The notes under the pieces were generated by a model. The model worked only from the letters and a program-made list of their open reading frames with translations, was not told the origin of the DNA and did no database searches. Positions 23,546-64,000 of a DNA stretch of 64,000 nt are shown piece by piece. The position numbers and the translations under genes were made by a program. How positions within the stretch are numbered: the first letter of the stretch is position 1; each line of letters starts with the position of its first letter. The stretch lies in IMG/VR virus record IMGVR_UViG_3300030616_000016, positions 1-64,000 of that record. One strand, written 5' to 3'.

Positions 23546-23552
23546 ATAATAA

Positions 23553-23639: not shown

Positions 23640-23641
23640 AT

Positions 23642-24425: not shown

Positions 24426-24479
24426 TCTCCTATTGCTTACAATACACGCGCCAGCGAGGGCGCGATTCTAAATATTAAA

Positions 24480-24816: not shown

Positions 24817-24826
24817 ATAAAAATCA

Positions 24827-25023: not shown

Positions 25024-25030
25024 CTTATTT

Positions 25031-25105
25031 TGGAGCGCCATGTGGGAATCAAACCCACTCCTTCAGGTTGGAGGCCTGACATGCGATCATTAACACCTAT
25101 GGCGC
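25031..25105 (-). tRNA. tRNA-Gly(TCC)
   Basis: TCAGG-CCTCCAA-CCTGA, CCA. Confidence 0.85.
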
Positions 25106-25114
25106 GTTATATTA

Positions 25115-25393
25115 TTACAATTCAATTGAACATGTTATTGCATCCACACGCATTATCATACTAGACAATCTATTGTTGCATACCCTAATATTATCTGCTA
25201 AAGGAACCAATTCTTGTTCTTTTTCTGCATTTATTGTGTCTGTATTTTTGGTACTAAGAATTGGTATAAGACGATCTTGTAATGCACTTAGTTTTCCATT
25301 TAGTAGATCAATATTTTGTTCTAATGACTCTATTTGTGTATAAACTTGGGGGTTCTTTTGCTGGTACTGCTTTTTTATCAGCCTCGCTATCAT
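25115..25393 (-). CDS. Coiled-coil hypothetical protein
   Basis: ORF between tRNAs. Confidence 0.5.
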   Translation of the reverse strand: MIARLIKKQYQQKNPQVYTQIESLEQNIDLLNGKLSALQDRLIPILSTKNTDTINAEKEQELVPLADNIRVCNNRLSSMIMRVDAITCSIEL

Positions 25394-25473
25394 ATCTTTC
25401 TGCCATTGTTATTTTCCTTAAAAAGGGTTTAAGTATAAAAAGCCCGTGCTGCCACGGATTATAAATTAAATAG

Positions 25474-25545
25474 AGCGCCTAGCGGGGCTCGAACCCGCAG
25501 CATCAACCTCGGCAAGGTTGCACTCTACCATTGAGTTATAGGCGC
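25474..25545 (-). tRNA. tRNA-Gly(GCC)
   Basis: CAACC-TTGCCGA-GGTTG. Confidence 0.9.
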
Positions 25546-25554
25546 TTTGTTTAT

Positions 25555-25630
25555 TGGTACTCCTGCGAGGACTCGAACCCCGAGAGCCAGATTAGAAATC
25601 TGGTGCTTTGTCCAGTTAAGCAACAGGAGC
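25555..25630 (-). tRNA. tRNA-Arg(TCT)
   Basis: CCAGA-TTTCTAA-TCTGG, CCA. Confidence 0.9.
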
Positions 25631-25631
25631 T

Positions 25632-26234
25632 CTAGTCTTCATCAAGTTCAACATCCCAATAAGCATCAGAAACAAACTTCTGCCATGACACTTTTCTCTT
25701 AAATATAGGTATTTTAAGAGCAGTCATGCCATGAGGCTCAATTGGTTTCTTTCTTAGCTTCATACCAGATTCTGCAGGAGTTCTATTGCCCTTATTGTTG
25801 TTACATTTAACACAGGCAATAACACAGTTCTTCCAGGTAGTTTTACCACCCTGTGCTTTAGGGATGATATGATCAATTGTGGCGTCTGAAGTTTGTAGCT
25901 GAACACCGCAGTATTGACATGAACAGCTATCACGTTTAAATAGATTGCGGCGTGACAGCTTCAACCGATGTGTAGGCATCTTGCCATAGCTAATCAGACG
26001 TATTACTTCAGGCACCTTTACTTCTAGTCTAACAGTTTTTATAAACTGTTCTCCTTCAACGACTTTCAAATCGGCCCATTCCTCAAAATTATATATAGAA
26101 TAGTCATCTGGTAGTATGGCTTGTGCACGGTCTTTAGCCATTAATTCAATGGCATGACGTACAGATGCAAATCCGATTGGCGTCCAGTTTTTGTTTAGTA
26201 CAAGCGTTGGTTCCTGAAGTACCACATTAATCAC
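25632..26234 (-). CDS. HNH endonuclease (McrA-like)
   Basis: LVLN..., RD..CQYCG, TIDHIIP..GG..W.N...C..CN. Confidence 0.9.
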   Translation of the reverse strand: MINVVLQEPTLVLNKNWTPIGFASVRHAIELMAKDRAQAILPDDYSIYNFEEWADLKVVEGEQFIKTVRLEVKVPEVIRLISYGKMPTHRLKLSRRNLFKRDSCSCQYCGVQLQTSDATIDHIIPKAQGGKTTWKNCVIACVKCNNNKGNRTPAESGMKLRKKPIEPHGMTALKIPIFKRKVSWQKFVSDAYWDVELDED

Positions 26235-26253
26235 CTCCTAATTGTGGTATAAA

Positions 26254-26328
26254 TGGCACCCCTGCAAGGATTTAAACCTTGATTAATAGGTCCGTAACCT
26301 ATCGTGTTATTCGTTACACTACAGGAGC
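26254..26328 (-). tRNA. tRNA-Arg(ACG)
   Basis: ATAGG-TTACGGA-CCTAT, CCA. Confidence 0.85.
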
Positions 26329-26348
26329 ATTATTAAATAATGGAATAA

Positions 26349-26425
26349 TGGTGGGCTGACTAGGACTTGAACCTAGGACCCGCTGATTATGAGTCAGCTG
26401 CTCTGACCAACTGAGCTACCAGCCC
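26349..26425 (-). tRNA. tRNA-Ile2/Met(CAT)
   Basis: GCTGA-CTCATAA-TCAGC; GGGC acceptor start is Ile2-like. Confidence 0.85.
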
Positions 26426-26427
26426 AA

Positions 26428-26498
26428 ATAGGGTCGTAGGTGGTTACGACTCCGCCAGGCGCCCCTGACTTCTTAGCCGAGTTAACCTCGTGCCCTAT
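26428..26498 (-). ncRNA. Small GC-rich four-way-junction RNA, unknown class
   Basis: ATAGGG/CCCTAT closes three hairpins; lies between two tRNAs. Confidence 0.55.
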
Positions 26499-26507
26499 AT
26501 ATATATT

Positions 26508-26583
26508 TGGTAGCGGGGCCGGGACTCGAACCCGACTTGGCGGATTATGGGGCCACCCAGACCACCTGGCCTTGCCCCCCGCG
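26508..26583 (-). tRNA. Atypical initiator-like tRNA-Met(CAT)
   Basis: CGCGGGG/CCCCGCT with 1:72 mismatch; loop CCCATAA; CCA. Confidence 0.7.
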
Positions 26584-26591
26584 ATATGTCT

Positions 26592-26668
26592 TGGTACACC
26601 CGAGAGGGCTTGAACCTCCATGACCCCTGATTAAAAGTCAGGTGCTTAGCCATTTAAGCTACGGGTGC
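26592..26668 (-). tRNA. tRNA-Lys(TTT)
   Basis: CCTGA-CTTTTAA-TCAGG, CCA. Confidence 0.9.
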
Positions 26669-26868
26669 TCTATAATTTCTTTTATGTTAGTTATGCTCTC
26701 ACGTGCATCTATAAAATTCTCATGCTCCCATTCTATGTCCACGCTGACATAATCAATCATTTTTCTTTTAGCATCTTCTATTGAGTCAGCCTCTATTACT
26801 TTTGTGCTTTCCATGATTTCTTCTCTTCTCATTGTAATTGCATATTTAGGCATTCTATTCCCTTTCAA
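26659..26868 (-). CDS. Hypothetical protein
   Basis: ORF between tRNAs, end overlaps tRNA-Lys 5' end. Confidence 0.5.
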   Translation of the reverse strand: MKGNRMPKYAITMRREEIMESTKVIEADSIEDAKRKMIDYVSVDIEWEHENFIDARESITNIKEIIEHP

Positions 26869-26872
26869 ATAT

Positions 26873-26949
26873 TGGTGCTACTGGTAGGAGTTGAACCTAC
26901 TACCTCTTCGTTATCAGCGAAGCGCTCTGACCAAATGAGCTACAGTAGC
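26873..26949 (-). tRNA. tRNA-Ile(GAT)
   Basis: CTTCG-CTGATAA-CGAAG, CCA. Confidence 0.9.
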
Positions 26950-26956
26950 ATGATAA

Positions 26957-27032
26957 TGGGGTGTCCGACTGGGTTCGAACCAGCAATTACTTGGGCCACA
27001 ACCAAGCGGCTTACCAGTTAGCCTACGGACAC
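26957..27032 (-). tRNA. tRNA-His(GTG)
   Basis: CTTGG-TTGTGGC-CCAAG, C discriminator, CCA. Confidence 0.9.
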
Positions 27033-27041
27033 AAAATATTT

Positions 27042-27446
27042 TCATTCAAATATGACTACTATATCATATTTGAATAGCTGTTTGTTTAGTTCTTTTAGAC
27101 ATGGCAACGGTCCCATGTCCTTAAATACTTCATTTGCAATACGTGTTGTAAGTTCGTTTGCTTTTTCTAAGGACATTGCTTCTGACCAGCCGCCCATGTC
27201 TCCATCATCAATAGTATTTATACGTATTCTTGTGTGGTATACATCGCCCGGCATCATTCGAGTTGTCTCAATAACTACGCAAAGCATACCTACGTTATAG
27301 TCACAAAGTTCTATATTGCCAGTAGGACACATCTTTGTATAACAAAGCTTGTCTGAATAACAAAACTCTTTCATGGGTTTTGTAATTTTCTTGATCTTTT
27401 CAAAGTCATTATACATGGTTGTTGTATGGTCTTTATGATTATTCAT
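27042..27446 (-). CDS. Hypothetical protein
   Basis: ORF with SD GGGGA. Confidence 0.55.
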   Translation of the reverse strand: MNNHKDHTTTMYNDFEKIKKITKPMKEFCYSDKLCYTKMCPTGNIELCDYNVGMLCVVIETTRMMPGDVYHTRIRINTIDDGDMGGWSEAMSLEKANELTTRIANEVFKDMGPLPCLKELNKQLFKYDIVVIFE

Positions 27447-27498
27447 TATGTCTATTCCCCATCAGGATTATTATTATTACAGTAAGTACAACAAAACC

Positions 27499-27690
27499 CT
27501 AGTGCATAAGGGTTGCCACATTCACAGCAAGAATATATAGAAGGACAGTGATCTTTTGCAACACTGTTGCTCGTCTTTCCCACTCATCTTCAGTAGTATC
27601 GTCACCTTCCTCATATGTTCTTTCTCTATCCATAGCAAGATAGATAGCCTCGACTGAGGTCATTTCATCATTCAGGCATTTTAATATCAT
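27499..27690 (-). CDS. Hypothetical protein
   Basis: ATGA overlap with upstream gene. Confidence 0.45.
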   Translation of the reverse strand: MILKCLNDEMTSVEAIYLAMDRERTYEEGDDTTEDEWERRATVLQKITVLLYILAVNVATLMH

Positions 27691-27935
27691 CCAGAATGGA
27701 CTATGTAATACATTTTACAATTGTTGCATTGAGCGCTAGTTTCATAACTGCCAGTTATAAGTATTTCAAAGCTCAATCCACCACAATTACGACATTGTAG
27801 TCTTGTGAATGTATCTTCGTCTGTAAATTTATGACTCAAATTTGTGTCTGACCAGGTTAAATTTGCTCTTTTTACTAGGTCAGCGCTTTCATTGAAACAA
27901 CCGTCTAATTTTTCTACTCTTTCACTTGTTCCCAT
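27687..27935 (-). CDS. Zn-ribbon protein
   Basis: CRNC...CNNC. Confidence 0.55.
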   Translation of the reverse strand: MGTSERVEKLDGCFNESADLVKRANLTWSDTNLSHKFTDEDTFTRLQCRNCGGLSFEILITGSYETSAQCNNCKMYYIVHSG

Positions 27936-28438
27936 ACTTGTGACTCCTTTACCTCAGCATTTTGAACCTCGGATGTTTCTAGCATAATATCATCAAATTT
28001 ACATGTTACTTGTATTTTATTTACAAGATATGTAGTTTTGAATTTGCCGTTTTTTATTCTCACATCTGTGTTCCCATCTACAGATGTGAATATAATATCT
28101 GTTCTATAGTTATTTTCATTCTGCATACGAAGCTTAAGTTGTTTGCAAGTAAGACTATCTATCTCTATTTTCGTTTGATCGTCCATTATAATTAGTTTCA
28201 TCTTGATGTAATATTTATTATCATCGTCGTTGTAATCAAAGGATATGCTTTCAACACAATTCAGTTCCTTATCATCGGCAAATACTTGCATATCTAATCC
28301 ACTATAAGACTCTGGATAAGTAGTATGCTTTCGTGTAGCAATCTCTTGACATACAATATCATGTAATTTTTGAAGCTCTTCTAAACGACTTTTAGAAGAC
28401 TTTACAATGTGTAGTTTTTCTAATATCTTCATAAACAT
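27914..28438 (-). CDS. Hypothetical protein
   Basis: SD AGGAG. Confidence 0.55.
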   Translation of the reverse strand: MFMKILEKLHIVKSSKSRLEELQKLHDIVCQEIATRKHTTYPESYSGLDMQVFADDKELNCVESISFDYNDDDNKYYIKMKLIIMDDQTKIEIDSLTCKQLKLRMQNENNYRTDIIFTSVDGNTDVRIKNGKFKTTYLVNKIQVTCKFDDIMLETSEVQNAEVKESQVWEQVKE

Positions 28439-28594
28439 TTAAGTTCTCCTTAGTTGCAATATTTATTTTGATTTATCTTTCTTTTCAGAATCTTTCTTTG
28501 CCATTTCATAATGAGCCATTGAAGGAAATGAGGTAACAAGTTTTCCATTTACCATTAGAAGAGCTTCAAATAGACATATATTATAGATGAATAA

Positions 28595-28671
28595 TGGAGC
28601 CTCTGGCGTGGAATTGCACCCGCAACATCTGCTTTACAAGAGCAGCGCTCTACTATTGGAGCTACAGAGGC
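28595..28671 (-). tRNA. tRNA-Thr(TGT)
   Basis: CTGCT-CTTGTAA-AGCAG, CCA. Confidence 0.85.
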
Positions 28672-28675
28672 ATTT

Positions 28676-28882
28676 TTATGATTTTTTGTTGTTGTGGATA
28701 GTGACTCCGATATTCAAATCAGCATGACCTTTAATTCCGTGGCAGGATGGCGACTGCGAATATCCGGTGGTTTTCTTGAAGTCCAATCGGGGGTCAGTCA
28801 GAAGCTCAATTGCTTTTGCTCTCGCCTTTCGTACTTGTTCAAGATTATCTCCATCGATTTCTACTTTAAGATGATATTTCAT
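28676..28882 (-). CDS. Hypothetical protein
   Basis: SD GAGG. Confidence 0.5.
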   Translation of the reverse strand: MKYHLKVEIDGDNLEQVRKARAKAIELLTDPRLDFKKTTGYSQSPSCHGIKGHADLNIGVTIHNNKKS

Positions 28883-28902
28883 ATTGTTCCTCTAAAAAAT
28901 AA

Positions 28903-28980
28903 TGGTGGCGGGGGTGGGATTCGAACCCACGACTTTCAGCGTATGAAACTGACGAGCTGACCGGACTGCTCTACCCCGCT
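28903..28980 (-). tRNA. Initiator-like tRNA-Met(CAT)
   Basis: AGCGGGG/CCCCGCC 1:72 mismatch; TCAGT-TTCATAC-GCTGA. Confidence 0.85.
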
Positions 28981-28989
28981 ATGGTTATA

Positions 28990-29781
28990 CTATGTATATT
29001 TAGTTTCTGGTGATGCCCATCCAGCAAAATCAGAAATATCTTGCTTATCAAAATCATCTGAATAATGTATCAAGTACATCTTGTCTTTGATTGATTTATC
29101 AAGCATTTTCAAGTCTGCTAATGGAGCATGAACAGCACCAGGAAAGAACTGCACGTCGTGAAACATTATTTTTGACTTATGAGCATACATTTCAATAAGT
29201 TCTGGATCAAATCTTGTGTCACCAGATACAAATATTTTCTCATCAGGAAGATATATACCAAATGATATAAAGGAGCTTTCCCAGTCTGCAGATTGTTCAG
29301 GGATATGTTTGGTTCTGAATATCTCTATATTTATTCCTTGATATTCAACTTCGAATATCTCTCTAGGTTCATGTTGTTTCCATTTAGGTCTAATAACATC
29401 AAAGAAATCTTCAAAATTAAGTTTCTTCATCTGATCGTTTTCTTCATTGTATTCAAGACCACCGCGTAATGTATAATCCCAGAGAATTCTTTGGTAGTTT
29501 TGTTCAATAATCATCTTGAGTTTTGGTTTACCTAGAAACTCTTGGCCGACATATCTATTCATAAGAGCTAGCATTTCTATTCCACCAACATGATCTGCAT
29601 GAGAATGTGTTGGGAGAATACATTCTATATCTATCGGTTGGATTCCTTTATCGGCGATAGCTCTTGGGCCGGTCATGCCAAAATCTACAAAGACATCGCT
29701 TTTTGTACCATGAATGATAAAGTTAGTTTGGTGATTTTTTGCCGCGAAGGCTGATCCAACACCAAGGAATTCGATGCTCAT
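28990..29781 (-). CDS. Metallo-beta-lactamase-fold hydrolase (RNase Z-like)
   Basis: FLGVGSA, THSHADH, SGDT, VHA, HY motifs; located in the tRNA cluster. Confidence 0.8.
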   Translation of the reverse strand: MSIEFLGVGSAFAAKNHQTNFIIHGTKSDVFVDFGMTGPRAIADKGIQPIDIECILPTHSHADHVGGIEMLALMNRYVGQEFLGKPKLKMIIEQNYQRILWDYTLRGGLEYNEENDQMKKLNFEDFFDVIRPKWKQHEPREIFEVEYQGINIEIFRTKHIPEQSADWESSFISFGIYLPDEKIFVSGDTRFDPELIEMYAHKSKIMFHDVQFFPGAVHAPLADLKMLDKSIKDKMYLIHYSDDFDKQDISDFAGWASPETKYT

Positions 29782-29800
29782 ATATTGCTCCTTCGAATAA

Positions 29801-29887
29801 TGGTGGGGATAGGTAGAATCGAACTACCCTAAGTCAACGACTAACGGATTTACAATCCGCCGCACATCCATAGTGCAATATATCCCC
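29801..29887 (-). tRNA. tRNA-Tyr(GTA)
   Basis: GCGGA-TTGTAAA-TCCGT, variable arm, CCA. Confidence 0.85.
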
Positions 29888-29893
29888 ATTAAA

Positions 29894-30295
29894 TTACCAA
29901 TCTATATCAATTGCGTATTTGCCGGCCTCTATAAGACCTTTCTTATATAAATCGTTTGCAATTACATAAGTATCAGGATAGAAGTTTCTTTCCCAGAACA
30001 TATGTAATTCCCAGTCATATTTCTGGCCCTCAATAGGTTGTTCTGGATCGCGTTCAAGCCATGTTTTTAGCTTTACGCCCATGATTTCGCCATTGACTTT
30101 TTCTGGTATAGAATCATTCATTGCTTTATCATTTGCTTCATTGGATGGAATATCTAAATAAAATATGCTGCGTTCTCTACAACCTGCTTGTTGCTGGAAT
30201 GAATATACACGTTTATATGTATCCATAACCAGTTTGTCCCAGTCATTAACATCAATGATTTGTATAGATTTGGTCTTAATCATTTCTTTCTCCAA
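29894..30295 (-). CDS. Hypothetical phage protein
   Basis: ORF. Confidence 0.6.
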   Translation of the reverse strand: MEKEMIKTKSIQIIDVNDWDKLVMDTYKRVYSFQQQAGCRERSIFYLDIPSNEANDKAMNDSIPEKVNGEIMGVKLKTWLERDPEQPIEGQKYDWELHMFWERNFYPDTYVIANDLYKKGLIEAGKYAIDIDW

Positions 30296-30311
30296 TCGAT
30301 TTTCAGAATAT

Positions 30312-30387
30312 TGGCTACCCGAGAAGGACTTGAACCTTCAACATGCAGTTCCAGAGACTGCCGCTCTACCAATTGAGCTATCGGGTA
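30312..30387 (-). tRNA. tRNA-Gln(CTG)
   Basis: GCAGT-CTCTGGA-ACTGC, CCA. Confidence 0.9.
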
Positions 30388-30394
30388 AAAATAA

Positions 30395-30469
30395 TGGCTC
30401 CGGCGGTTGGGATCGAACCAACGACAAACTGGTTAACAGCCAGCCACTCTACCGCTGAGCTACACCGGA
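30395..30469 (-). tRNA. tRNA-Asn(GTT)
   Basis: GCTGG-CTGTTAA-CCAGT, CCA. Confidence 0.9.
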
Positions 30470-30475
30470 ATGATT

Positions 30476-30895
30476 TTATAATGGTTTTTTGGGACAGTCA
30501 TGCAAATTGTCTTCATCAAACAATCTCCATTTATCATTGATCTGTTTCCATGTAAGATTCTTTTTACCACAACATCTACAGGTCACAGCTGCGCTTTCTT
30601 TTGGATTGCTTCTGCGTCTTGGTTTACGCGACGTATTTCCAACACAATTATGTAGTATCCCCTGATCGAATAGCCTCCATCCATTTTCGGTTTCTCCCCA
30701 TTCGAGGCCGCCTTTACCACAATATCTACATTTGTGGGTTGAAGGGGCTTTAGCACTAAACTCGTACCCTTGGTAATCTATAATGCCTTTTTCGATAGCT
30801 GTTTCAATACCCATATGTCCCATTCTATAGTCTAGAACACTTTCTTCGAAATCCATTACAGTGTCTAGTGTAAAATCTGCCATGTCTCCCATCAT
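30476..30895 (-). CDS. Protein with a duplicated CxxCG..W..WRLFD..HxC Zn module
   Basis: Two internal repeats; SD AGGAG. Confidence 0.6.
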   Translation of the reverse strand: MMGDMADFTLDTVMDFEESVLDYRMGHMGIETAIEKGIIDYQGYEFSAKAPSTHKCRYCGKGGLEWGETENGWRLFDQGILHNCVGNTSRKPRRRSNPKESAAVTCRCCGKKNLTWKQINDKWRLFDEDNLHDCPKKPL

Positions 30896-30917
30896 TTTAC
30901 TCCTAAAATATTATAAA

Positions 30918-30999
30918 ACTTGCGAGTGGGAATTGAACCTGCTTGTCATTTGACAGAGAAACTCCGGAGTCGCTCCAGCCCACCAGGGCTAACCGCAAG
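30918..30999 (-). ncRNA. Atypical tRNA-like RNA with a tRNA-Sec-style D arm
   Basis: CTTGCG/CGCAAG acceptor, AGCCC-TGGT-GGGCT, variable arm, GGTTCAATTCC; no canonical anticodon loop. Confidence 0.6.
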
Positions 31000-31211
31000 A
31001 TTTATTTTAATCGATACTCTCTTCATAGATTTCAGGTATAATGGTTATGCTATCCCTCTCCCAATCTACACGTGGCTCTACTCTCTCGATATACTTTGCA
31101 ATTCTATCGAGAGTTATTGGTGATTTACTCTTGTATTTCATCACATGTGGTTCTGTATTATTAAACTGGACTAATATTATACATGAATGCATGTTTCGCT
31201 CCTTGGTATAT

Positions 31212-31286
31212 TGGCTACCCTGCATGGACTCGAACCATGGTACTCAGCTCCAAAGGCTGATGTCCTACCAACTGGACGACAGGGTA
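31212..31286 (-). tRNA. tRNA-Gln(TTG)
   Basis: TCAGC-CTTTGGA-GCTGA, CCA. Confidence 0.9.
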
Positions 31287-31289
31287 ATA

Positions 31290-31383
31290 TGGCAGTGGGT
31301 GTGGGATTCGAACCCACGGAACCTCTTCCAAGGCCCGCTTGTTTTCAAGACAAGTGCGATCAACCGGACTCTGCCAACCCACT
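31290..31383 (-). tRNA. tRNA-Ser(TGA)
   Basis: CTTGT-CTTGAAA-ACAAG, long variable arm, CCA. Confidence 0.9.
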
Positions 31384-31398
31384 AATAATTTAGAATAT

Positions 31399-31490
31399 TG
31401 GCGGAACGGAGAGGATTTGAACCTCTGGTGCGACGGATGCCGCACGATGATTTAGCAAACCATTGCTTTAAGCCACTCAGCCACCGTTCC
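31399..31490 (-). tRNA. tRNA-Ser(GCT)
   Basis: ATGGT-TTGCTAA-ATCAT, long variable arm, CCA. Confidence 0.9.
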
Positions 31491-31492
31491 TT

Positions 31493-31915
31493 TTATCCAA
31501 CTAAAAGATATACTTTACTGGGTCCAAATGTATTGTATATATCATCTAGTTTTTGTTTTGATATCATAGAAGATATGTCAATTATTACAACATTAATTGA
31601 ACATCCAGCTCTTTCTTTATATGTATCCCATGTTTCTACAAATTTACCATATTTAATGCTAATTTTACTAGATATATTGGGAACTATTGTAATTGTATTT
31701 AGCCAACCTCTTCTTCCTAGTTCATTAGCGATAGTAGAATTACCACATCTTCTAGGTAATCTAACAGAAACAGTGCAAAGCTCTTTACAAGCTGCAAGTG
31801 GTGAAAATTTCTCAATCAATTCAGCTACTTCTTTGCTTGCGTTTCTTTCTAGAGTTTCTTCAACTAAAGTTACTGCAAATTCTTTAGCAGCATTTGATAA
31901 TTTATAATTATCCAT
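31493..31915 (-). CDS. Hypothetical protein with a degenerate P-loop (PRRCGNS)
   Basis: SD AGGAGG. Confidence 0.55.
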   Translation of the reverse strand: MDNYKLSNAAKEFAVTLVEETLERNASKEVAELIEKFSPLAACKELCTVSVRLPRRCGNSTIANELGRRGWLNTITIVPNISSKISIKYGKFVETWDTYKERAGCSINVVIIDISSMISKQKLDDIYNTFGPSKVYLLVG

Positions 31916-31962
31916 GAGACGTCCTCCTAGGCTTACTAGCCTTAAAAATTAAAGTGGAATAA

Positions 31963-32038
31963 TGGTGGAGGTGATCGGGATCGAACCGACGACCTCTTGC
32001 TTGCAAAGCAGGCGCTCTCCCAGCTGAGCTACACCCCC
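31963..32038 (-). tRNA. tRNA-Ala(TGC)
   Basis: GGGGGTG acceptor with G3:U70, TTTGCAA loop, CCA. Confidence 0.92.
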
Positions 32039-32289
32039 ACACTGAATATAATTAGTTCCTTTTCCATCTTTTGGCCACTCAGGGCTTGTCTTGTTAATAA
32101 ACTTATGAAAGTCGAGAATCTTACCATTATCGATAACTAATAGTTTATTACAAGATGGACAGTCTACCGTAGCGCCTTCGGCCTCTTTGATGGAATTACA
32201 GTTGACATCAAATTCAGAATTGCATTCTACACAAACCAACTTAATCATGGTATTACTCCTGAATAATGGTCTCATTATTGAATAATAAA

Positions 32290-32373
32290 TCGGGACGGGA
32301 GGATTTGAACCTCCGAGGGCATTAATGCCACCTGGTCCCAAACATAGCGTTATAGCAGATTTAGCTATAGACC
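32290..32373 (-). pseudogene. Damaged tRNA(TGG) with an intact 3' half (long variable arm) and a diverged 5' half
   Basis: TTTGGGA-CCAGG...GGTTCAAATCC-CGTCCCGA; 5' strand does not pair. Confidence 0.7.
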
Positions 32374-32874
32374 AATATTTTTAATTTGTCCATTATGAAA
32401 TGCGGCATGACAATTTTTACACAATACAGTGCATTTTTTAAGCTCAGACTCTAATCTCTTCCATGACCAATATCTCATTGTTTTAAATGATTGGTCCTTA
32501 ACATTAGGGTCTATATGGTGAATATCCAAAGAGCAAATGAATTTATTGAATCCACAATGCATGCACTTCCCGCCTAAAAACTCCACTGCCTTTTGTCTTG
32601 TTTCTTTTGCCTTTTTGTTATTATACGCATTCTGACATTTGCCGCAAATACTCTTTTTATGTCCATAAAACTTTTTGGGATCCGTCTCTCCACAAGAACA
32701 TTTCCTTATAGTGGCCATATCTTTTGGGAGTTTTCCTTTTGGTCCACGCCTAGTTTTCAATCCAAATTTTTTCAACCAATATCTAACACAGTCCTGAGAT
32801 ACTGACAATTTGTCTGATATCTGGCGTAAGCTCAAACCTTCTTCTATTAATTTATTTAAAATATTCTGTTCCAT
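32365..32874 (-). CDS. HTH-HNH endonuclease
   Basis: N-terminal HTH; GGKCMHCG...LDIHH...KCTVLCKNCH. Confidence 0.85.
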   Translation of the reverse strand: MEQNILNKLIEEGLSLRQISDKLSVSQDCVRYWLKKFGLKTRRGPKGKLPKDMATIRKCSCGETDPKKFYGHKKSICGKCQNAYNNKKAKETRQKAVEFLGGKCMHCGFNKFICSLDIHHIDPNVKDQSFKTMRYWSWKRLESELKKCTVLCKNCHAAFHNGQIKNIGL

Positions 32875-32881
32875 GTAGAGT

Positions 32882-32909
32882 ATTATAACACAGGTTTAAA
32901 AAATGTCAA
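32882..32909 (-). promoter_or_regulatory. sigma70-like promoter TTGACA-N16-TATAAT (likely leaderless HNH mRNA)
   Basis: Perfect hexamers; ATG 7 nt after the -10. Confidence 0.75.
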
Positions 32910-33044
32910 TTTAAGATATCTGCATCTCTATTATTATTTCAAATTACGGTGCGAATCAATGGGCTTTAACCATCGGTCTTTGGCGCTAGTCATAAAGTAT
33001 GCACCAATATTCTTCTAGGTAGGACTAATTCCATACTGAATAAA

Positions 33045-33122
33045 TGGTCCGGGTAGCTGGATTCGGACCAGCGGTTTCCACGCCCCAAACGTGGCGGGAT
33101 GACCAAGCTTCCCCATACCCGG
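33045..33122 (-). tRNA. tRNA-Pro(TGG)
   Basis: CCACG-TTTGGGG-CGTGG, CCA. Confidence 0.85.
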
Positions 33123-33133
33123 ACAGAATTTAA

Positions 33134-33211
33134 TGGCGGGACCAACGAGAGTCGCACTCGCTTCACTCCACCTTGACAGGGTGGCGGCTCCACTACTTTG
33201 CCCTTGGCCCC
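33134..33211 (-). tRNA. tRNA-Asp(GTC)
   Basis: CCACC-CTGTCAA-GGTGG, CCA. Confidence 0.85.
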
Positions 33212-33238
33212 ATGGATATTGGTAGTTCTTATCTAACA

Positions 33239-33667
33239 TTACGATTTTATTGCCATAAATATTATTGCTATGATAGTCACTATTTGGACTATTCCAAATA
33301 CAGGCCAAAATCTTTTTGTATGTTTATCTAATACTTCTTTATGTTTACTATAATAATTTTTATCGCAACATAGCTGGACACTTTTTATATAGCTTGCAGG
33401 ATATTTGGTGTTTGTACTATAATCACTAAATCCTTCTCTTGCTATTTCAGCAGTATCTAGTTGTGATATAAATGAATTTTCGGCAGGGGTATCAATCTTT
33501 TTGCCATCTATCAGTGTAACTCTAATAAAAGATTCATCTTCACGTTCGATCTCATCTTGTGCTTTAGTATATAGAATTGCAGCTGTTACAGCGGCACAGA
33601 AACCAAAGTCAAATAACAAAAATATAAATGTTACTGCGATATTATAAGTCATTTTACTTCCTTCCAA
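33239..33667 (-). CDS. Membrane protein (2 TM)
   Basis: Hydrophobic N- and C-terminal segments. Confidence 0.55.
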   Translation of the reverse strand: MEGSKMTYNIAVTFIFLLFDFGFCAAVTAAILYTKAQDEIEREDESFIRVTLIDGKKIDTPAENSFISQLDTAEIAREGFSDYSTNTKYPASYIKSVQLCCDKNYYSKHKEVLDKHTKRFWPVFGIVQIVTIIAIIFMAIKS

Positions 33668-33685
33668 TACATGAACAAATAAAGA

Positions 33686-33949
33686 TCATTCTACGAAACT
33701 ACCTATTATCATACATGCAATCCACATAACCTGTATTCCACAGAACAATCCATTAATTACAATACCCGCAATGGATAATCCGTGCTGTTTCCAATTTGTT
33801 TGTATTAGACCAAGTATTAAGCCTAAAACAGGTAAAGGCGCTCCTAGTAATGGGATCCATCCAAAAAATATACACATACATCCAAGAACAAATGATGCTA
33901 TACCTAAACCAAAATTTCCTGTGCGCTTTGCTTCCATGATTTTCTCCAA
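33686..33949 (-). CDS. Small membrane protein (DUF4190-like)
   Basis: GIASFVLG...GLILG...AGIVI. Confidence 0.6.
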   Translation of the reverse strand: MEKIMEAKRTGNFGLGIASFVLGCMCIFFGWIPLLGAPLPVLGLILGLIQTNWKQHGLSIAGIVINGLFCGIQVMWIACMIIGSFVE

Positions 33950-33997
33950 ATTAAGTTTGTTTATGACAACCTGTTTAATTATATTTTGAATTTCAAT

Positions 33998-34675
33998 TCA
34001 AAAACGTATAGAAGATTTACTATTTACACTTTGATGATTCTTAAATGTTCTATAAGTTATAATTATCTGTAATCCATAATCTCCTTGATAGAGATATGTA
34101 TCTTCATCTTCTATAGATATATAATGATAGCCCCATTCGCCTAATATATTAGCTACCTGTTTTCTGGACATGCCTCTCGTAATTTTGTTATATCCTATCA
34201 TAGTGACGCCAACATTATTAGGATATAGTCGTTGTTTCATTTCATATCTTTTTTGATACCATGATTTGTTTCTTTCTTTCTCTTTCTCTTTTCTTCTTTC
34301 TTCAGCTTTTCTAGCTGCTTCTTCTTTTTCTAATAGCAAGGCTATCTTTTTACTTTGAATTTCTTGAATCTTATCTTTATATTTTTTACCTAATCCAGTT
34401 TTATAAAATGTATTTTTTGTTTCTGTAAATAATGATTTCCATGCTGGTGCTAATGTATCAGAATTTATTAATCTGTCTATTCTTAATATAATCAGATGTG
34501 CTTGATTTATGTCGTCGGCAGATTCAAGACTGTCTGATAGTGATTGTAAGGCTACTGGAGAAAGTGCAGTTTCGGGACCATCATTAGTATGAGCACATAG
34601 TATTAATAATATTACAAAACCAGTTATTGCAATTAATGATACAGTTATAAGCAGTTTTTTATATCTTTCTTCCAT
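33998..34675 (-). CDS. Membrane-anchored protein with a SmpA/BLIP-like C-terminal domain
   Basis: N-terminal TM; YNKITRGMSRKQVANILG. Confidence 0.55.
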   Translation of the reverse strand: MEERYKKLLITVSLIAITGFVILLILCAHTNDGPETALSPVALQSLSDSLESADDINQAHLIILRIDRLINSDTLAPAWKSLFTETKNTFYKTGLGKKYKDKIQEIQSKKIALLLEKEEAARKAEERRKEKEKERNKSWYQKRYEMKQRLYPNNVGVTMIGYNKITRGMSRKQVANILGEWGYHYISIEDEDTYLYQGDYGLQIIITYRTFKNHQSVNSKSSIRF

Positions 34676-34755
34676 AACGATAAAAATTCTCCTTCATATT
34701 TATCGAACTTATAAAGTATTGTTTTGTTAACAAATAGACGTTAGTTTGATATAAA

Positions 34756-34826
34756 TACCCCTTGATGGAATCGAACCACCGCTCAGTGGATGTAAGCCAC
34801 CAGCCCTGCCATTAGGCTAAAGGGGT
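34756..34826 (-). tRNA. tRNA-Val(TAC)
   Basis: GGTGG-CTTACAT-CCACT. Confidence 0.85.
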
Positions 34827-35177
34827 CTTGGATTATATTCTGTTAATTTTGTCATATGGTCAAATGTAAAAGTAAAATGTAGGTCTTCTACCTTGAAAAT
34901 TGATTTCACTCCGTATATAATCCTTTTATATAACTGACTTAAACCGTCTGCACAAAATATTTCTATTTTGTATATAGAATCCATATTTATCATTTCTTCA
35001 TTTAGAAATAACAATAGAAACATTCCTGTTTTTTGTTTCAGGGTAAGCTGATAAGGCTTGTAATTCTTGCATTTGATTGACGCCTGATTGTGTTATTTCT
35101 GAGGATATTGCAAACATATCGCAGCCGCCAAACTCGTTTATATGTACCGCTTCTGTCTCAATTTCCATTATACTTTC

Positions 35178-35528
35178 CTACAAATTAAATGATATATTGT
35201 TTGTTACAGCATCAAAGATAAATTCACAGACAGTTCCAGTTTCTTTAGTTTCAATATCAGTTATTTTGACACCGATAATATATCTTATATGAGCTAAAGG
35301 ATAGCTATTTGTTACTACTCTAAATAGACATATCATATACATTTTCTTTATATCTTCTATGTCTTCGTTATAACTAGATAATATAAATCTGCCTGTTTTT
35401 GTTTTGGTATTTGCATTAATAGCATATATCATTTGTGTCTTAGGATATCCACCTGCATAATCTTCATGTGTAATACCAAATATATCTGTGTTTTGATAAC
35501 CTGTTACTTTTAGTTCTTCTTTGTCCAT
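35178..35528 (-). CDS. Hypothetical protein
   Basis: SD AAGGA before MDKEELK. Confidence 0.5.
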   Translation of the reverse strand: MDKEELKVTGYQNTDIFGITHEDYAGGYPKTQMIYAINANTKTKTGRFILSSYNEDIEDIKKMYMICLFRVVTNSYPLAHIRYIIGVKITDIETKETGTVCEFIFDAVTNNISFNL

Positions 35529-35549
35529 GATTATCCTTAAGTAAATAAA

Positions 35550-35625
35550 TGGTGACCCCACGGGGAATCGAACCCCGATCCACAGACTGAAAATCTGTTA
35601 TGCTCAACCGTTACACCATGGGGCC
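35550..35625 (-). tRNA. tRNA-Glu(TTC), first tRNA of the cluster
   Basis: ACAGA-TTTTCAG-TCTGT, CCA. Confidence 0.9.
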
Positions 35626-43592: not shown

Positions 43593-45647
43593 ATGAAAGC
43601 ATTAGGATTTGATTGTGGAACGTACAACTTAGTAATGGCGTCTCCTGGCAAGGAAGAGGGAAAGCCAAGTATCAAGCGTGAGATTAATGTATTCCTTAAG
43701 ATTGAGAACCCACAAAAGTTTACTTTAGGTATGTTACGCAAACAAGGTGTTCCAATGATGGAAGAAGATGGCTCAGTATATATTCTTGGACAAGCTGCAA
43801 TTGACCTTGCAGTAGATCTAGGTACTACATATCGCAGACCTATGAAAGCAGGGTGCTTGTCTCCTGAAGAGAAAGATGCATTTAAGATCCTTGGTTATAT
43901 GCTCAAAGGAATGGTTGGAAGTCTTAAGGAAGAGACTGTATTGTTCTATAGTGTACCTGCAGAACCTATTGATGCACAAGGCGATACAAAATACCATGAG
44001 AAGGTTATTGGATCCATTCTTGGAACAATTGATAACCTAACGGCTAAACCTCTAAATGAAGCTTCAGCAATCATTTATGCATGTACTAATAATCAAACAG
44101 GCATTGGCATTTCATGTGTTACACCTGATACTTCTATCATAACAGATAAAGGTATTATAGAAATAGCAAAATTACATGAAGGTGATAGAGTTTTAACAAG
44201 ACTTGGTACTTATGAACAAGTATCTAAAGTAACAGTAAGTGAAAGGGATGAAGAGATACAAGAGATAAATTTTTTCTGTTCTAATCGAAACCTTAGAATA
44301 ACGTCGGAACACAAAATTTATACAAAAAGTAATGGCATTGAACAATGGAAGCGTTCTGATCAAGTAACTAATGAAGATTATGTTATGATGCCCAGTGTAT
44401 CTTATAAAGATAAAACGTGTTATATAGCTATAGACAAACGTGTTACATGCTCTAAAGACACAAAACGAGAATTCTATGAAGTACATGAAAATGTAGCAAA
44501 GTTCATAGGCCTTTTTCTAGGAGATGGACATATAGAACTATCTAAAGGTGGAATATTCTTTGATTTTGGTAAGCATGAAACAAATTTGCACCAATTTGTA
44601 ATGGATATAGCAAAAGAAAAATTTGGTAATTCTATGTCTTTTATCGAAAAGGGAGAAGAATGTATAAGATGTCAAATGAATAATAAGGCACTTGCAAGGT
44701 GGTTAAAAGAAAATTGTTACGATAGTAGTGGTAAAAAGAAATTGCCTTGGTTAGTAGACGAGTTAAATAGACCGGCAAGAATCGGTTTGTTGTCAGGATT
44801 ATTAGAGAGCGATGGGCATATTGGAGATAATGAAGTATCATTTGAGAATACTAGCTCAGCTCTTACTATGTTAGTTCAACAATTATGTTTATCTGAGGGA
44901 TATACTGGTAGTTATTGGTTCAGAGATTCTAGGTCTGGTGGAACAATAGAAAATAGAACAATAACAGGAAACGATAGCTGCTGTTTCACATTGCATGAGC
45001 AATATATACAATCGCTCAAGTTTCTGATTAGTGGCAATAGACATAGGACAACATCTTTCCAAGATAGTAAACAATGGAACAAAGTGCGCAGTAATCAAAA
45101 AGTTAAATATACAGGCAAAGTGTATGATTTAACAGTTGAAAATGAACATTCTTTTTGCGTACCAGGATGCTGTATACACAATTGTGGTGCTGGTATGATT
45201 AACGTAGCTTTTGTAAAGATGGGTGTCAATATATTTGAGTTTAGTCTTACAAGCTCTGGTGATTGGATTGATAGGGAAAGTGCTAGGGTTACAGGAGAAT
45301 CAGAAGCTTTTATTAATCAGGCTAAACATAATATTGACTTGTCTAAAGAACCACAAAATATGACTGAGATGGCTATTTCTAAGAATTATGAGATACTTAT
45401 TGAGCGTAGCATTCTTAAGATCAAAGATGGCATTATCAATTCTAAAGGCAAGGCTAAGACACAGAATCCTATACCTATTGTTATAGCAGGTGGTACTAGT
45501 TCTGTGAATGGTTTTATGGCAGTGTTTAAGAAAACACTAGAAAGGATTGAAATGCCTATTCCTATATCAGAATGCATACAGCCTCTGAAGCCATTACATT
45601 CAGTAGCTAAAGGATGTCTTGTTGCTGCAGAGCTTGAAGCTGGATAG
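43593..45647 (+). CDS. Actin-like (MreB/ParM-type) ATPase, intein-containing
   Basis: GFDCGT, RRPMKAG, VPA, NEA.A, GIS|CGAG, AGGTS, VAKG. Confidence 0.8.
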   Translation: MKALGFDCGTYNLVMASPGKEEGKPSIKREINVFLKIENPQKFTLGMLRKQGVPMMEEDGSVYILGQAAIDLAVDLGTTYRRPMKAGCLSPEEKDAFKILGYMLKGMVGSLKEETVLFYSVPAEPIDAQGDTKYHEKVIGSILGTIDNLTAKPLNEASAIIYACTNNQTGIGISCVTPDTSIITDKGIIEIAKLHEGDRVLTRLGTYEQVSKVTVSERDEEIQEINFFCSNRNLRITSEHKIYTKSNGIEQWKRSDQVTNEDYVMMPSVSYKDKTCYIAIDKRVTCSKDTKREFYEVHENVAKFIGLFLGDGHIELSKGGIFFDFGKHETNLHQFVMDIAKEKFGNSMSFIEKGEECIRCQMNNKALARWLKENCYDSSGKKKLPWLVDELNRPARIGLLSGLLESDGHIGDNEVSFENTSSALTMLVQQLCLSEGYTGSYWFRDSRSGGTIENRTITGNDSCCFTLHEQYIQSLKFLISGNRHRTTSFQDSKQWNKVRSNQKVKYTGKVYDLTVENEHSFCVPGCCIHNCGAGMINVAFVKMGVNIFEFSLTSSGDWIDRESARVTGESEAFINQAKHNIDLSKEPQNMTEMAISKNYEILIERSILKIKDGIINSKGKAKTQNPIPIVIAGGTSSVNGFMAVFKKTLERIEMPIPISECIQPLKPLHSVAKGCLVAAELEAG
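44115..45182 (+). mobile_element. LAGLIDADG intein (356 aa)
   Basis: CVTPDT, TSEH, GLFLGDG, GLLESDG, VYDLTV...HN followed by C. Confidence 0.92.
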
Positions 45648-62326: not shown

Positions 62327-63502
62327 TTATAATTTACCGGTCATAAATTTTATTGCTTTGCCAAATGAATCAACCTTATTAAGTTCAATTACATTGGCTA
62401 CTTGGAACTCATTCCTGCCTTGTTTAGTTTTATTAGTACGTATACGTCCTCTAACAAGACATGTCTTGTTTGCTTCGCCAAGTTCTTCAAGTGTTTTCTT
62501 CAAAGATTTCTCTGCTTTTTTATATGAAACAACTGGAGCTATGCTATGTCCATCTTCCATATAAAGAATACGCCTCTTTGATTCTTCAACTATGAATAAC
62601 TGGCAGGCAACGGTTACGAACATCCAATGTTGCAATCTGCTATCTTCGCCCATAGCTACTCTAGATGCATCAGATAAAGTTTTAATATCACAATCCTTTA
62701 TCCTCTCAAGTCTTTCTTTGTTGTCATCTAGAAATGGTGCGCTTTCAGATAGACTGAAACCAAGATGATAAAGCTCTTCTTTATGATACACATTTTTATC
62801 CATAGGTTCACAGTCTAACATTTCTATATTAAATACTTCGTTCTTCTTTTCTTCGTCATTCAGAGTCTTGCGTTTCATTATCTTGTTAGACTCTTTTTTT
62901 ATGTTCTCAATATTAATGACAATCCAATTTCTATTTGGCTTACCATCTTCTGTAGTTTCAGCTATTGGATCAAAGAATCCAATCTTTGCCAAAGCATATA
63001 AGGCTGATGTATATATGGTTTTATAATTATTAATATAAGCCCATATAAACTCTGTTAGACTGTCGAATGGTCCATACTTTTTAACCAGTTCTTCAATAGC
63101 TGAGGCAGCATTGCTATTCACATAGCGTATACCATCCATGCCTACTCTTATGCCGTACCCATTCTCTAATGGCTGGCATATTTGTGAGCATCCTTCTATA
63201 CTTGGCGGTCTAACTTCAAGCCCAGCAGATGTCGCTTCTTCAATATATTTACTGACAGTAGATTTGTTGTTGGACCTGGCATTAATCATTGCGCTTATGT
63301 ATTCTTCAAGATATAAGCATTTTAGGTATGCAGTCTTATAGGTAAGATAGGCATAGCTTACACTATGTGAGTTTTTTGATATAAGACCACTAGATAAGAT
63401 ATAATTATGGGGCTCGTTTTCCATTCTAATATTATATAGTCTACGCTTACCTAGTTTTCTTATCTTATTTATCTTTACTTTCTTCAATTGCAAGTTTTGC
63501 AC
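62327..63502 (-). CDS. dnaE: DNA polymerase III alpha C-terminal fragment preceded by a split-intein C-half
   Basis: SHSVSYA..Y.TAYLK, PPSI, GPFDS, GFFD, E...LG, OB-like C-terminus; GTG start with SD AGGAG. Confidence 0.85.
   Translation of the reverse strand: MQNLQLKKVKINKIRKLGKRRLYNIRMENEPHNYILSSGLISKNSHSVSYAYLTYKTAYLKCLYLEEYISAMINARSNNKSTVSKYIEEATSAGLEVRPPSIEGCSQICQPLENGYGIRVGMDGIRYVNSNAASAIEELVKKYGPFDSLTEFIWAYINNYKTIYTSALYALAKIGFFDPIAETTEDGKPNRNWIVINIENIKKESNKIMKRKTLNDEEKKNEVFNIEMLDCEPMDKNVYHKEELYHLGFSLSESAPFLDDNKERLERIKDCDIKTLSDASRVAMGEDSRLQHWMFVTVACQLFIVEESKRRILYMEDGHSIAPVVSYKKAEKSLKKTLEELGEANKTCLVRGRIRTNKTKQGRNEFQVANVIELNKVDSFGKAIKFMTGKL
63371..63502 (-). mobile_element. Split intein IntC (44 aa)
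   Basis: KVKINKIRKLG..LYNI....PHNYILSSGLISKN followed by S. Confidence 0.8.
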
Positions 63503-63998
63503 GATTGAATTTTCTCCTCATACAAAATTCAGCATTATTATACATGAGTCTTAGCACTTTTGTTAAATCCCTTTCTATATACCACTCTATATAATATAAA
63601 ATACCTCTTTGCTGTGAGGGTATTTTATAATCTATATCTAGTATATGGAATAGCATATATGATATTTGTGATACAACAGATTTCGTTCCTAGAAATCTTA
63701 TGCACCATTTTTTATTAACGCTATTTCTATATAGAGTTCCATCACCATCAAAAAATCCTCTTAGCATATGTCCAAATAAATCTATTTTTATAGGAGGTAA
63801 TACTGCATCATTTGTTTTATCACTTGTAAAACCAAATCTGTAAAGATCTTCAACCATTTTTGGAGATGCTACTGTAATTCTGGACATTGGTTTTACATTG
63901 ACTTCTCTGCCTGCTATTATCTTTTTACCTCCAGGTATTTCTATTATCTTGTTATCAGTTTTCCATTGTTTTTTAACATAGTTGATTATATATCTGTC
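63465..63998 (-). CDS. LAGLIDADG homing endonuclease (5'-truncated by window)
   Basis: LRGFFDGDG; frame open to the window edge and different from the IntC frame. Confidence 0.85.
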   Translation of the reverse strand, partial: DRYIINYVKKQWKTDNKIIEIPGGKKIIAGREVNVKPMSRITVASPKMVEDLYRFGFTSDKTNDAVLPPIKIDLFGHMLRGFFDGDGTLYRNSVNKKWCIRFLGTKSVVSQISYMLFHILDIDYKIPSQQRGILYYIEWYIERDLTKVLRLMYNNAEFCMRRKFNRAKLAIEESKDK

Positions 63999-64000
63999 GC

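Follow-up and report, generated by a model that had tools for sequence, protein, structure and literature searches.

A phage dnaE gene fractured by a split intein, its two parts separated by a free-standing LAGLIDADG endonuclease gene

Introduction

At one end of a 64,000-nucleotide (nt) stretch of phage DNA (bases 1-64000, plus strand, of the virus record IMGVR_UViG_3300030616_000016; hereafter the window), an open reading frame (ORF) for the C-terminal part of the replicase DnaE begins with what looks like the C-terminal half of an intein, and overlaps an upstream ORF with a LAGLIDADG endonuclease motif. Does this locus hold a naturally split intein accompanied by a free-standing gene for an endonuclease, as an earlier reading of the window from its letters (the sequence-only reading) had proposed, or an ordinary intein whose reading frame is broken? 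The window belongs to a single 231,647-bp sequence of 38% GC, estimated to be 95% complete. Parts of the locus beyond base 64000 are given here in the window's numbering.

Fractured genes were described in 2009 by Dassa, London, Stoddard, Schueler-Furman and Pietrokovski for eight host enzymes, including DnaE with three loci (PMC2677866). Fractured phage genes in which split inteins flank an endonuclease, taken as established by the sequence-only reading, are indeed documented in that work. We find that the present locus is a real and widespread form of this known layout, and not a new kind of system. We consider it likely, with a probability of about 0.82, that it is a fractured phage dnaE gene whose two products are joined by trans-splicing, and whose insert homes under the action of the homing endonuclease gene (HEG) that it carries.

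Results

Two adjacent genes encode a whole DnaE

The locus consists of three genes, dnaE-N, HEG and dnaE-C, arranged head to tail on the minus strand. The first one, dnaE-N (64368..67049; 893 residues), lies outside the window. It encodes a 794-residue N-extein (64668-67049) that carries the PHP, DNA_pol3_alpha and finger domains and ends in ...FSRYGFNA, followed by the 99-residue N-terminal intein half, IntN (64371-64667; dnaE-N residues 795-893; CLSPSTKL...GLDMLQVI), and a TGA stop codon (64368-64370). This is the DnaE-N ending in an IntN plus stop that the sequence-only reading had suggested looking for beyond the window. In the ORF list, HEG runs from its stop codon (63465-63467) to 64322 with an ATG start (63465..64322; 285 residues) or to 64334 with a TTG start (289 residues); the 3' two-thirds of the gene (63465..64000) lie in the window.

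The third gene, dnaE-C (62327..63502; 391 residues; GTG start, stop codon 62327-62329), encodes the C-terminal intein half, IntC, and the C-extein. Its first 44 residues (63371..63502), MQNLQLKKVKINKIRKLGKRRLYNIRMENEPHNYILSSGLISKN, end in ...GLISKN (...PHNYILSSGLISKN up to the terminal Asn44). The Ser+1 codon (63368-63370) follows directly; the C-extein opens with SHSVSYAY and later contains an HHH_6 domain. The GTG lies 38 nt within HEG, in a different frame, and a Shine-Dalgarno (SD) sequence, AGGAG (63514..63518), is found 11 nt 5' of it, inside the HEG coding sequence. Hence, the sequence-only reading was exact on the gene's own AGGAG and GTG, on the highly basic 44-residue IntC (net charge +9) ending in SKN before a serine, and on the 38-nt overlap with an upstream LAGLIDADG ORF in another frame. 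On these domain assignments, chance is excluded as the source of the gene layout, because the Pfam HHH_6, LAGLIDADG_3 and DNA_pol3 domains are all significant.

The intein halves and the exteins were searched and modelled as separate pieces, never as a joined sequence. The N-extein matches the Pfam families DNA_pol3_alpha (8e-67), finger (2e-45) and PHP (6.5e-40), and the C-fragment matches HHH_6 (3e-10) and the DNA polymerase family PHROG 405 (2.9e-26). In the full-length DnaE profile of NCBIfam, PRK05673, residues 3-794 of the N-extein align to positions 5-751 (E 2.9e-201) and residues 45-376 of dnaE-C to positions 752-1064. Since the first alignment ends at 751 and the second resumes at 752, the exteins abut with neither gap nor overlap; PHROG 405 agrees, with the break at position 793. 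Two adjacent ORFs on the same strand therefore jointly cover the whole enzyme, the upstream one ending in IntN and the downstream one opening with IntC. No second DnaE was found in the phage genome, in which this pair is the only one. The junction FNK/SH (the slash marks the insertion point) proposed from the window was right in its Ser+1 and SH and wrong in FNK, as the N-extein ends in GFNA.

The fractured layout recurs in other phages

The last 31 residues of the N-extein together with IntN served as the query of an exhaustive phmmer search, which retrieved 399 cluster representatives at E <=1e-3, and 138 of the best 150 of these had a parsable junction. In 115 of the 138, the junction is the one seen here, Y-[GSAC]-F-N-x followed directly by an intein that begins with Cys, Ser or Thr. 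Among these 115 site-sharing representatives, 96 end at most 25 residues from the end of IntN, and 17 continue as cis inteins.

The genomic context was analysed in eight relatives from other metagenomes, seven of them picked through IntN and one through HEG (L015, L016/L017, L018, L019-L022 and L023). All eight show DnaE-N/IntN, then an ORF of 277-318 residues, then DnaE-C. The middle ORF overlaps DnaE-C by 20-41 nt in the seven loci measured, and in seven of the eight relatives it is related to HEG. Word-based protein searches with dnaE-C and the IntN region returned essentially the query alone, and pattern searches of IMG/VR gave no match for HEG and a single distant DnaE, whose cis intein occupies a different site. 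The cultured-phage collection yielded one weak, unannotated match, MT835601.

The endonuclease gene has its own expression signals

A sigma-70 promoter, TTGACA-17-TATAAT with a TG extension (64362-64390, minus strand, outside the window), lies upstream of HEG and overlaps the last IntN codons and the stop. It is the sole 12/12 match in a 5-kb scan and one of five perfect matches in the whole genome. An equivalent 12/12 promoter precedes the endonuclease gene in L020, and an 11/12 one in L018. The SD of HEG, GGAG, is located 7 nt 5' of the ATG. IntN and HEG are separated by two in-frame TGA stops and a 45-nt spacer, which holds the second TGA, the -10 box and the SD. HEG is thus a free-standing endonuclease gene with its own signals, whose 3' part overlaps the start of the downstream gene. 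The promoter and the overlap that supplies the dnaE-C start are as predicted by the invasion model of Dassa et al. (PMC2677866). No intrinsic terminator was predicted on the gene strand within the locus. We also considered an RNA hairpin masking the HEG ribosome binding site (Dassa 2009): one can be drawn, with a z of -1.2 that is not significant.

Could the locus nevertheless be an ordinary cis intein that holds a nested LAGLIDADG domain and was split by a sequencing or assembly error or by very recent pseudogenisation? HEG lies in the same frame as DnaE-N/IntN, the LAGLIDADG domains of canonical inteins occupy exactly the same structural position, and several LAGLIDADG-type cis inteins are present in the same genome. 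The shared frame, however, carries no meaning here, because IntN and HEG frames match in only 3 of the 7 relatives with computed frames. To form one frame, two TGA codons would have to be read through and a frameshift would have to lead into IntC. The spacer carries a -10 box and an SD, and HEG has an extra N-terminal helix-turn-helix (HTH) domain, typical of free-standing phage endonuclease genes and included in a full-length match to PHROG 4645. Logan contigs of the best-matching run, X1 (marine sediment), span 63263-64590 and are identical to the record, with 0 differences; the indel near 63500 for which the sequence-only reading advised checking the sequence data is absent from them. In addition, the identical split occurs in the eight loci from other samples, and 96 cluster representatives terminate at the IntN boundary. 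The mark of a cis intein named in the sequence-only reading, a LAGLIDADG frame continuous with DnaE-N/IntN and a frameshift error, was not found: HEG starts at 64322 or 64334 and TGA codons intervene. A broken cis intein is therefore most improbable. The IntN stop, the start, SD and promoter of HEG, and the recurrence in eight relatives support a naturally split DnaE intein with a free-standing LAGLIDADG gene.

A link between IntN and HEG through TGA suppression or an alternative genetic code was rejected. TGA ends 41 of the 161 long ORFs, none of the 21 phage tRNAs is a suppressor, and IntC lies in a different frame in any case.

Both intein halves resemble the cyanobacterial DnaE split inteins

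Searched as a single sequence against solved structures, IntN matches the Npu DnaE IntN (4lx3_A) at 9e-8 and Ssp at about 2e-5, the next intein being gp41-1 at 0.47. An eight-locus IntN profile scores from 7e-18 (Npu 4lx3_A) to 3e-13 with the Npu, Ssp and consensus DnaE inteins; no other solved intein does better than 5e-4. For the single IntC sequence, the best PDB matches are to the Npu DnaE IntC (4kl5 and 4lx3_B; E 0.008-0.017); a seven-locus IntC profile matches Npu IntC at 2.7e-7, followed by a DnaX mini-intein at 7e-5. Judged by these comparisons, both halves are nearest to the cyanobacterial DnaE split inteins among solved inteins. IntN has a net charge of -8 and IntC of +9. Opposite charges of the two halves are a known trait of split inteins.

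We modelled the complex of dnaE-N residues 790-893 (IntN) with residues 1-50 of dnaE-C (IntC). The predicted complexes obtained interface scores (ipSAE) of 0.86, 0.86 and 0.87, and the best control 0.02; contact agreement between runs was >=95% and the predicted local distance difference test (pLDDT) of the partner >=78. Among solved complexes, 51 of 78 attain the pass mark, and among mismatched pairs 2 of 108; passing it shows likeness rather than proof of binding, because Npu DnaE complexes have already been solved.

The catalytic set comprises Cys1, block B S-L-E-H (Ser for Thr), block F PHNY with its HN, the terminal Asn and Ser+1. Across the eight split loci, at 28-37% identity, Cys1 and the block B His are invariant and the residue three positions before this His is Thr or Ser. 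The same loci all keep the HN of block F and the terminal Asn, and their +1 residue is Ser in seven and Cys in one. The locus thus has the class 1 position-1 nucleophile, block B, terminal Asn and +1 nucleophile, with Lys in place of the class 1 penultimate His of block G. The absence of this His does not exclude class 1, because cyanobacterial DnaE inteins lack it too (Npu ends in ASN). The penultimate Lys, which the sequence-only reading had singled out as non-canonical, is present, but its weight as a special feature was overstated: the penultimate residue is K in three, A in two, G in two and S in one of the eight split loci, and never His. Lys is thus one of several residues found at this variable position in a His-less lineage.

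Non-canonical residues (the penultimate Lys, the block F Asn in place of Asp, the block B Ser) raise the question of whether the halves are splicing-dead relics, with the DnaE fragments held together by IntN and IntC as a non-covalent heterodimer, or with the host DNA polymerase III (Pol III) used instead. Such a heterodimer would have a parallel in the NrdA fragments of Aeh1, whose assembly involves no splicing, and phage enzyme fragments that assemble in this way are known (PMC3045599). On the other hand, the nucleophiles and the terminal Asn are kept in 8/8 loci despite the low identity (Cys1 throughout; Ser+1 in seven, Cys in one), which is hard to explain without selection for the chemistry. 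The cyanobacterial relatives do without the penultimate His as well, and the present lineage also has cis mini-inteins (P0020, P0026 and others) that share these residues and must splice for a working DnaE. We thus hold it unlikely that the intein halves are dead, and favor trans-splicing.

Insertion site and lineage

The insertion point, RYGFNA/SHS, lies 4 residues downstream of the cyanobacterial site within the same YGFNKSH motif. The native Npu junction is AEY/CFNK (PMC3759424), and Cys-Phe-Asn is also given in PMC3585056. The claim that the junction differs from the cyanobacterial DnaE site thus holds, with FNA/SHS here versus AEY/CFNK.

The same point is used by bacterial inteins. A scan of GTDB genomes with the pattern F-x-x-Y-G-F-N-K-C-[L/F] gave at least 120 places, in 94 of which a cis intein ending in N/SH could be recognised, mostly of 400-450 residues or about 150 residues. 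These 94 belong to Chloroflexota, Rokubacteria, Deinococcus-Thermus, the candidate phyla radiation (CPR) and other groups, and 93 of them end in the canonical HN. None showed phmmer similarity to the IntN or IntC studied here and none matches the HEG profile; by sequence, these bacterial cis inteins are a different intein lineage in the same site. The phage-type lineage itself includes cis mini-inteins and larger cis inteins that end in [G/A/K/S/C/L]N/SH. The sequence-only reading had called the halves a candidate new orthogonal trans-splicing pair; "new" stands in a relative sense, as fractured DnaE has been known since 2009 (PMC2677866) and the site is commonly occupied by cis inteins in bacteria.

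Other occupied positions were seen nearby. In eight representatives (P0058, P0071, P0074, P0080, P0085, P0092, P0097 and P0112), related inteins that begin with Cys sit 2 residues further downstream, directly after GFN(K/R/L/A)(S/A)H. Related inteins thus occupy at least three registers in the seven-residue YGFNKSH motif, including Y/CFNK and the present site. A 1267-residue phage DnaE (L003 3040-6843; IMGVR_UViG_3300027742_000029) carries a cis intein at another nearby site (...AYAYISYW/CVHGQ ... NIVVHN/CSYMKAHHP); the block F of this intein, MENEPHNY, is the same as in our IntC. In a contig assigned to an Acidimicrobiia metagenome-assembled genome (MAG; L083 1744-2037, CAVVWO010000015.1), the frame stops 98 residues after Cys1, as in an IntN. 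It is an exception among the otherwise cis GTDB matches and may come from a prophage or a mis-binned phage contig.

A possible empty site was found in run X2, which belongs to another marine-sediment study. A single contig of 186 nt and depth 4 reads IETFSRYGFNA-AHSVS. It matches perfectly 132 nt of the N-extein (genome 64669-64800; L002 2669-2800) up to the intein boundary and continues for 18 letters, 16 of which equal the first C-extein bases, a string that is unique in the genome. Ala is found at +1, where the intein-bearing allele needs Ser. The contig is an apparent uninterrupted, intein-less dnaE allele in otherwise near-identical DNA, and suggests a recent gain or loss of the whole module. 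The empty-site pattern was not found in IMG/VR or in JGI contigs. As a candidate target of the endonuclease, the X2 site would allow a direct homing test.

HEG encodes a single-chain LAGLIDADG protein with a helix-turn-helix

The HEG product contains an N-terminal HTH region and two LAGLIDADG motifs in one chain. The first motif, VIGLLLADG (residues 84-92; 64047-64073, minus strand), lies outside the window, and the second, LRGFFDGDG (residues 187-195; 63738..63764, minus strand), is inside it and includes an invariant acidic residue. HEG matches Pfam LAGLIDADG_3 at 1.4e-8 (35.4 bits against a cut-off of 22.5) and the endonuclease family PHROG 4645 at 2e-41. In the first motif G86, D91 and G92, and in the second R188, G189, D192, G193, D194 and G195, are invariant among seven orthologues. 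The AlphaFold 2 model, built on the orthologue alignment, has a pLDDT of 86.3. With this model, Foldseek returned the bI3 maturase and I-AniI at about 2e-8, within a group of single-chain LAGLIDADG enzymes at 2e-8 to 1e-5; further matches are I-Tsp061I, the I-OnuI family and the nested domain of the TliVMA intein (7qss). Two motifs with conserved acidic residues and the alpha-beta-beta-alpha-beta-beta-alpha pseudo-dimer fold are thus found in one predicted chain, and HEG is, by sequence and model, an intact gene for a single-chain LAGLIDADG homing endonuclease with an N-terminal HTH.

Orthologues in six relatives are 35-46% identical, HTH region included; the related gene of L023 is more distant (profile E 7e-48). 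A search with the HEG profile gave 317 relatives, of which about 30 are close and probably form the DnaE-associated set. A more distant one, P0186, also lies within a fractured dnaE. The remaining relatives belong to a broad family of HTH-LAGLIDADG proteins of 260-340 residues, and one of them, P0225, is free-standing beside a helicase gene. No paralogue of HEG was found in the phage genome. An origin of HEG from a nested intein domain, or its passage into one, found no support: the HEG profile misses both the 94 bacterial and the phage-type cis inteins at the site. Two matches among the phage-type cis relatives fall in other, upstream inteins.

In L022, the slot between the halves (6990-7946) is occupied by a 318-residue non-LAGLIDADG protein with a weak match to the PD-(D/E)xK family PF18741 (E 0.0075). 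NUMOD-like and Vsr-like motifs were read in it by eye. This unrelated, putative endonuclease in the same slot indicates that endonucleases turn over within one split-intein lineage.

Has the LAGLIDADG protein instead been domesticated, so that it supplies dnaE-C expression or acts as a DNA-binding or maturase-like helper, and not (only) as a mobile nuclease? Phages that have diverged deeply keep HEG beside the split intein, its overlap of 20-41 nt with dnaE-C is conserved, consensus promoters stand in front of the gene, and the top fold match is the maturase bI3. However, both catalytic LAGLIDADG motifs are invariant, the slot of L022 holds an unrelated, possibly PD-(D/E)xK, endonuclease, a sign that selfish genes turn over, and the X2 allele suggests ongoing gain or loss. 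Control elements borne by the endonuclease gene are, moreover, already part of the selfish-invasion model (PMC2677866). Domestication is in our view quite unlikely, and a mobile endonuclease gene is the preferred explanation.

Other elements in the phage genome

Further intein-type elements were observed. A 721-residue radical-SAM-like protein (window 8381-10546, minus strand; Radical_SAM 3e-6) contains a cis intein with a nested LAGLIDADG domain (LAGLIDADG_3 3e-6), and its C-terminal junction, ...ANGFVSKN/CAG, also has a penultimate Lys. A 684-residue actin-like protein (window 43593-45647, plus strand; Pfam Volactin 4e-51) contains a cis intein with two LAGLIDADG motifs and the junctions ...GIGIS/CVTPD ... 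CCIHN/CGAG. LAGLIDADG or intein C-terminal matches were also seen at genome positions 157249-157554, 163123-163269 and 180472-180633 (all plus strand), in long open frames of 1033, 1001 and 1813 residues. By these matches, the number of intein-type elements in the phage is six or more.

Window positions 23384-35625 hold a cluster of 21 tRNA genes, every one of them on the minus strand and none a suppressor. A gene for a 382-residue reverse transcriptase (genome 71438-72586, minus strand; L002 9438-10586; Pfam RVT_1 7.6e-20; YADD motif) is flanked by glycosyltransferase-like and RecA-like genes.

Discussion

Homology and conservation give good support to trans-splicing and to endonuclease-driven homing of IntN-HEG-IntC as a unit, both of which we infer, as we do the activity of the endonuclease and its target. 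In the proposed mechanism, the Pol III alpha subunit would be made as two polypeptides, one with the 794-residue N-extein and the 99-residue acidic IntN, the other with the 44-residue basic IntC and a 347-residue C-extein. Their opposite charges would draw IntN and IntC together, and the two would fold as a single HINT domain. Trans-splicing would then follow the standard class 1 route, with an N-S acyl shift at Cys1, acyl transfer to Ser+1, cyclisation of Asn44 and an O-N shift, to yield a 1141-residue DnaE reading ...RYGFNA-SHSVSYAY.... HEG, whose 3' end carries the dnaE-C start, most likely cuts the intein-less dnaE of co-infecting phages at the GFN(K/A)/(S/A)H codons, and repair of the cut allele would copy IntN-HEG-IntC in as one unit.

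Several points weigh against this mechanism. Run X1 is not independent evidence, because it is probably the sample behind the record's assembly. None of the RNA sequencing runs searched contains the locus stretch. The score of the predicted complex may partly reflect the model's memory of the solved Npu DnaE complexes. Position 4 of block F is Asn here and in most relatives, and Asp in Npu; block B has Ser for Thr, and a Lys replaces the penultimate His. To our knowledge, none of these three residues is known to block splicing. The start of IntC is uncertain, since the GTG gives 44 residues and a TTG at codon 6 gives 39; the latter fits the length in the relatives and lacks an SD. Finally, the empty-site allele is represented by a single short contig at depth 4.

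For an essential phage replicase, the locus confirms synthesis as two separate pieces, which protein splicing most probably unites. With it, the known fractured-gene layouts come to include the LAGLIDADG family; current understanding is not overturned. Most canonical inteins have an endonuclease of this type nested in them, so that the locus plausibly captures how endonucleases come to enter inteins. Protein ligation makes wide use of the cyanobacterial DnaE split inteins, including Npu. The large lineage found here, which is specifically related to them and has 96 split representatives among the best 150, is a pool of candidate Cys1/Ser+1 trans-splicing pairs.

A more far-reaching idea, which we put forward tentatively and consider rather doubtful, is that the cyanobacterial DnaE split intein has its source, or a living sister, in this phage lineage of split DnaE inteins with a free-standing HTH-LAGLIDADG gene, and that the lineage supplies the intermediate so far missing from two steps of the model of Dassa et al. 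If so, a free-standing LAGLIDADG gene would have been caught in an intein before its in-frame fusion, at the origin of the commonest intein architecture. The dispersed cyanobacterial genes dnaE-n and dnaE-c would descend from a fractured phage dnaE, after a shift of the intein by four codons within YGFNKSH. As a by-product, the lineage would offer about 100 naturally split inteins with Ser+1 junctions, all diverged relatives of that of Npu DnaE.

The closest known systems are the fractured genes of Dassa 2009. Here as there, a replication enzyme is broken by a split intein into two adjacent ORFs on the same strand, a free-standing endonuclease gene lies between the halves with its 3' end overlapping the downstream start, control elements lie upstream, and the origin is a phage. 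Unlike those loci, which have GIY-YIG or Vsr-like endonucleases, the present one has a single-chain LAGLIDADG protein with an HTH. This marks a variant, because the endonuclease type is a property of the described examples and not of the arrangement. L022, with its non-LAGLIDADG endonuclease, may correspond to the DnaE-2 type of Dassa 2009. The word LAGLIDADG is absent from PMC2677866, whose split inteins are only about 40% similar to the cyanobacterial ones, and a 2025 preprint on actinophage inteins names Vsr-like endonucleases as the type known from split inteins. Within an incomplete coverage of the literature, we found no paper combining a split intein, LAGLIDADG, DnaE and a metagenome, and an earlier description is possible.

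With the cyanobacterial DnaE split inteins (Npu, Ssp; 4lx3, 4kl5, 1zd7), the locus shares the host protein, the YGFNKSH motif, the split point (IntN of about 100 residues, IntC of about 36-44), the acidic IntN and basic IntC, and the absence of a penultimate His. It differs in its insertion 4 residues downstream and in Ser+1, in place of AEY/CFNK with Cys+1. Cyanobacterial dnaE halves lie at separate chromosomal loci without an endonuclease gene (PMC2677866). The NCBIfam models of the cyanobacterial fragments score below their cut-offs here (PRK09532, 484.7 against 1525 bits; PRK07373, 111 against 646).

The bacterial cis inteins (Deinococcus arenicola, L069; Chloroflexota and Rokubacteria MAGs) share the identical point, GFNK/C...N/SH, and Ser+1; unlike the split locus, they are contiguous. 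Finally, as in canonical LAGLIDADG inteins (TliVMA, 7qss), the endonuclease lies between HINT blocks B and F, and the HEG model matches the nested domain. In contrast to those inteins, the endonuclease here has a gene to itself, with a separate promoter, SD and stop, and bears an additional HTH, so that the HINT domain would be made from two polypeptides.

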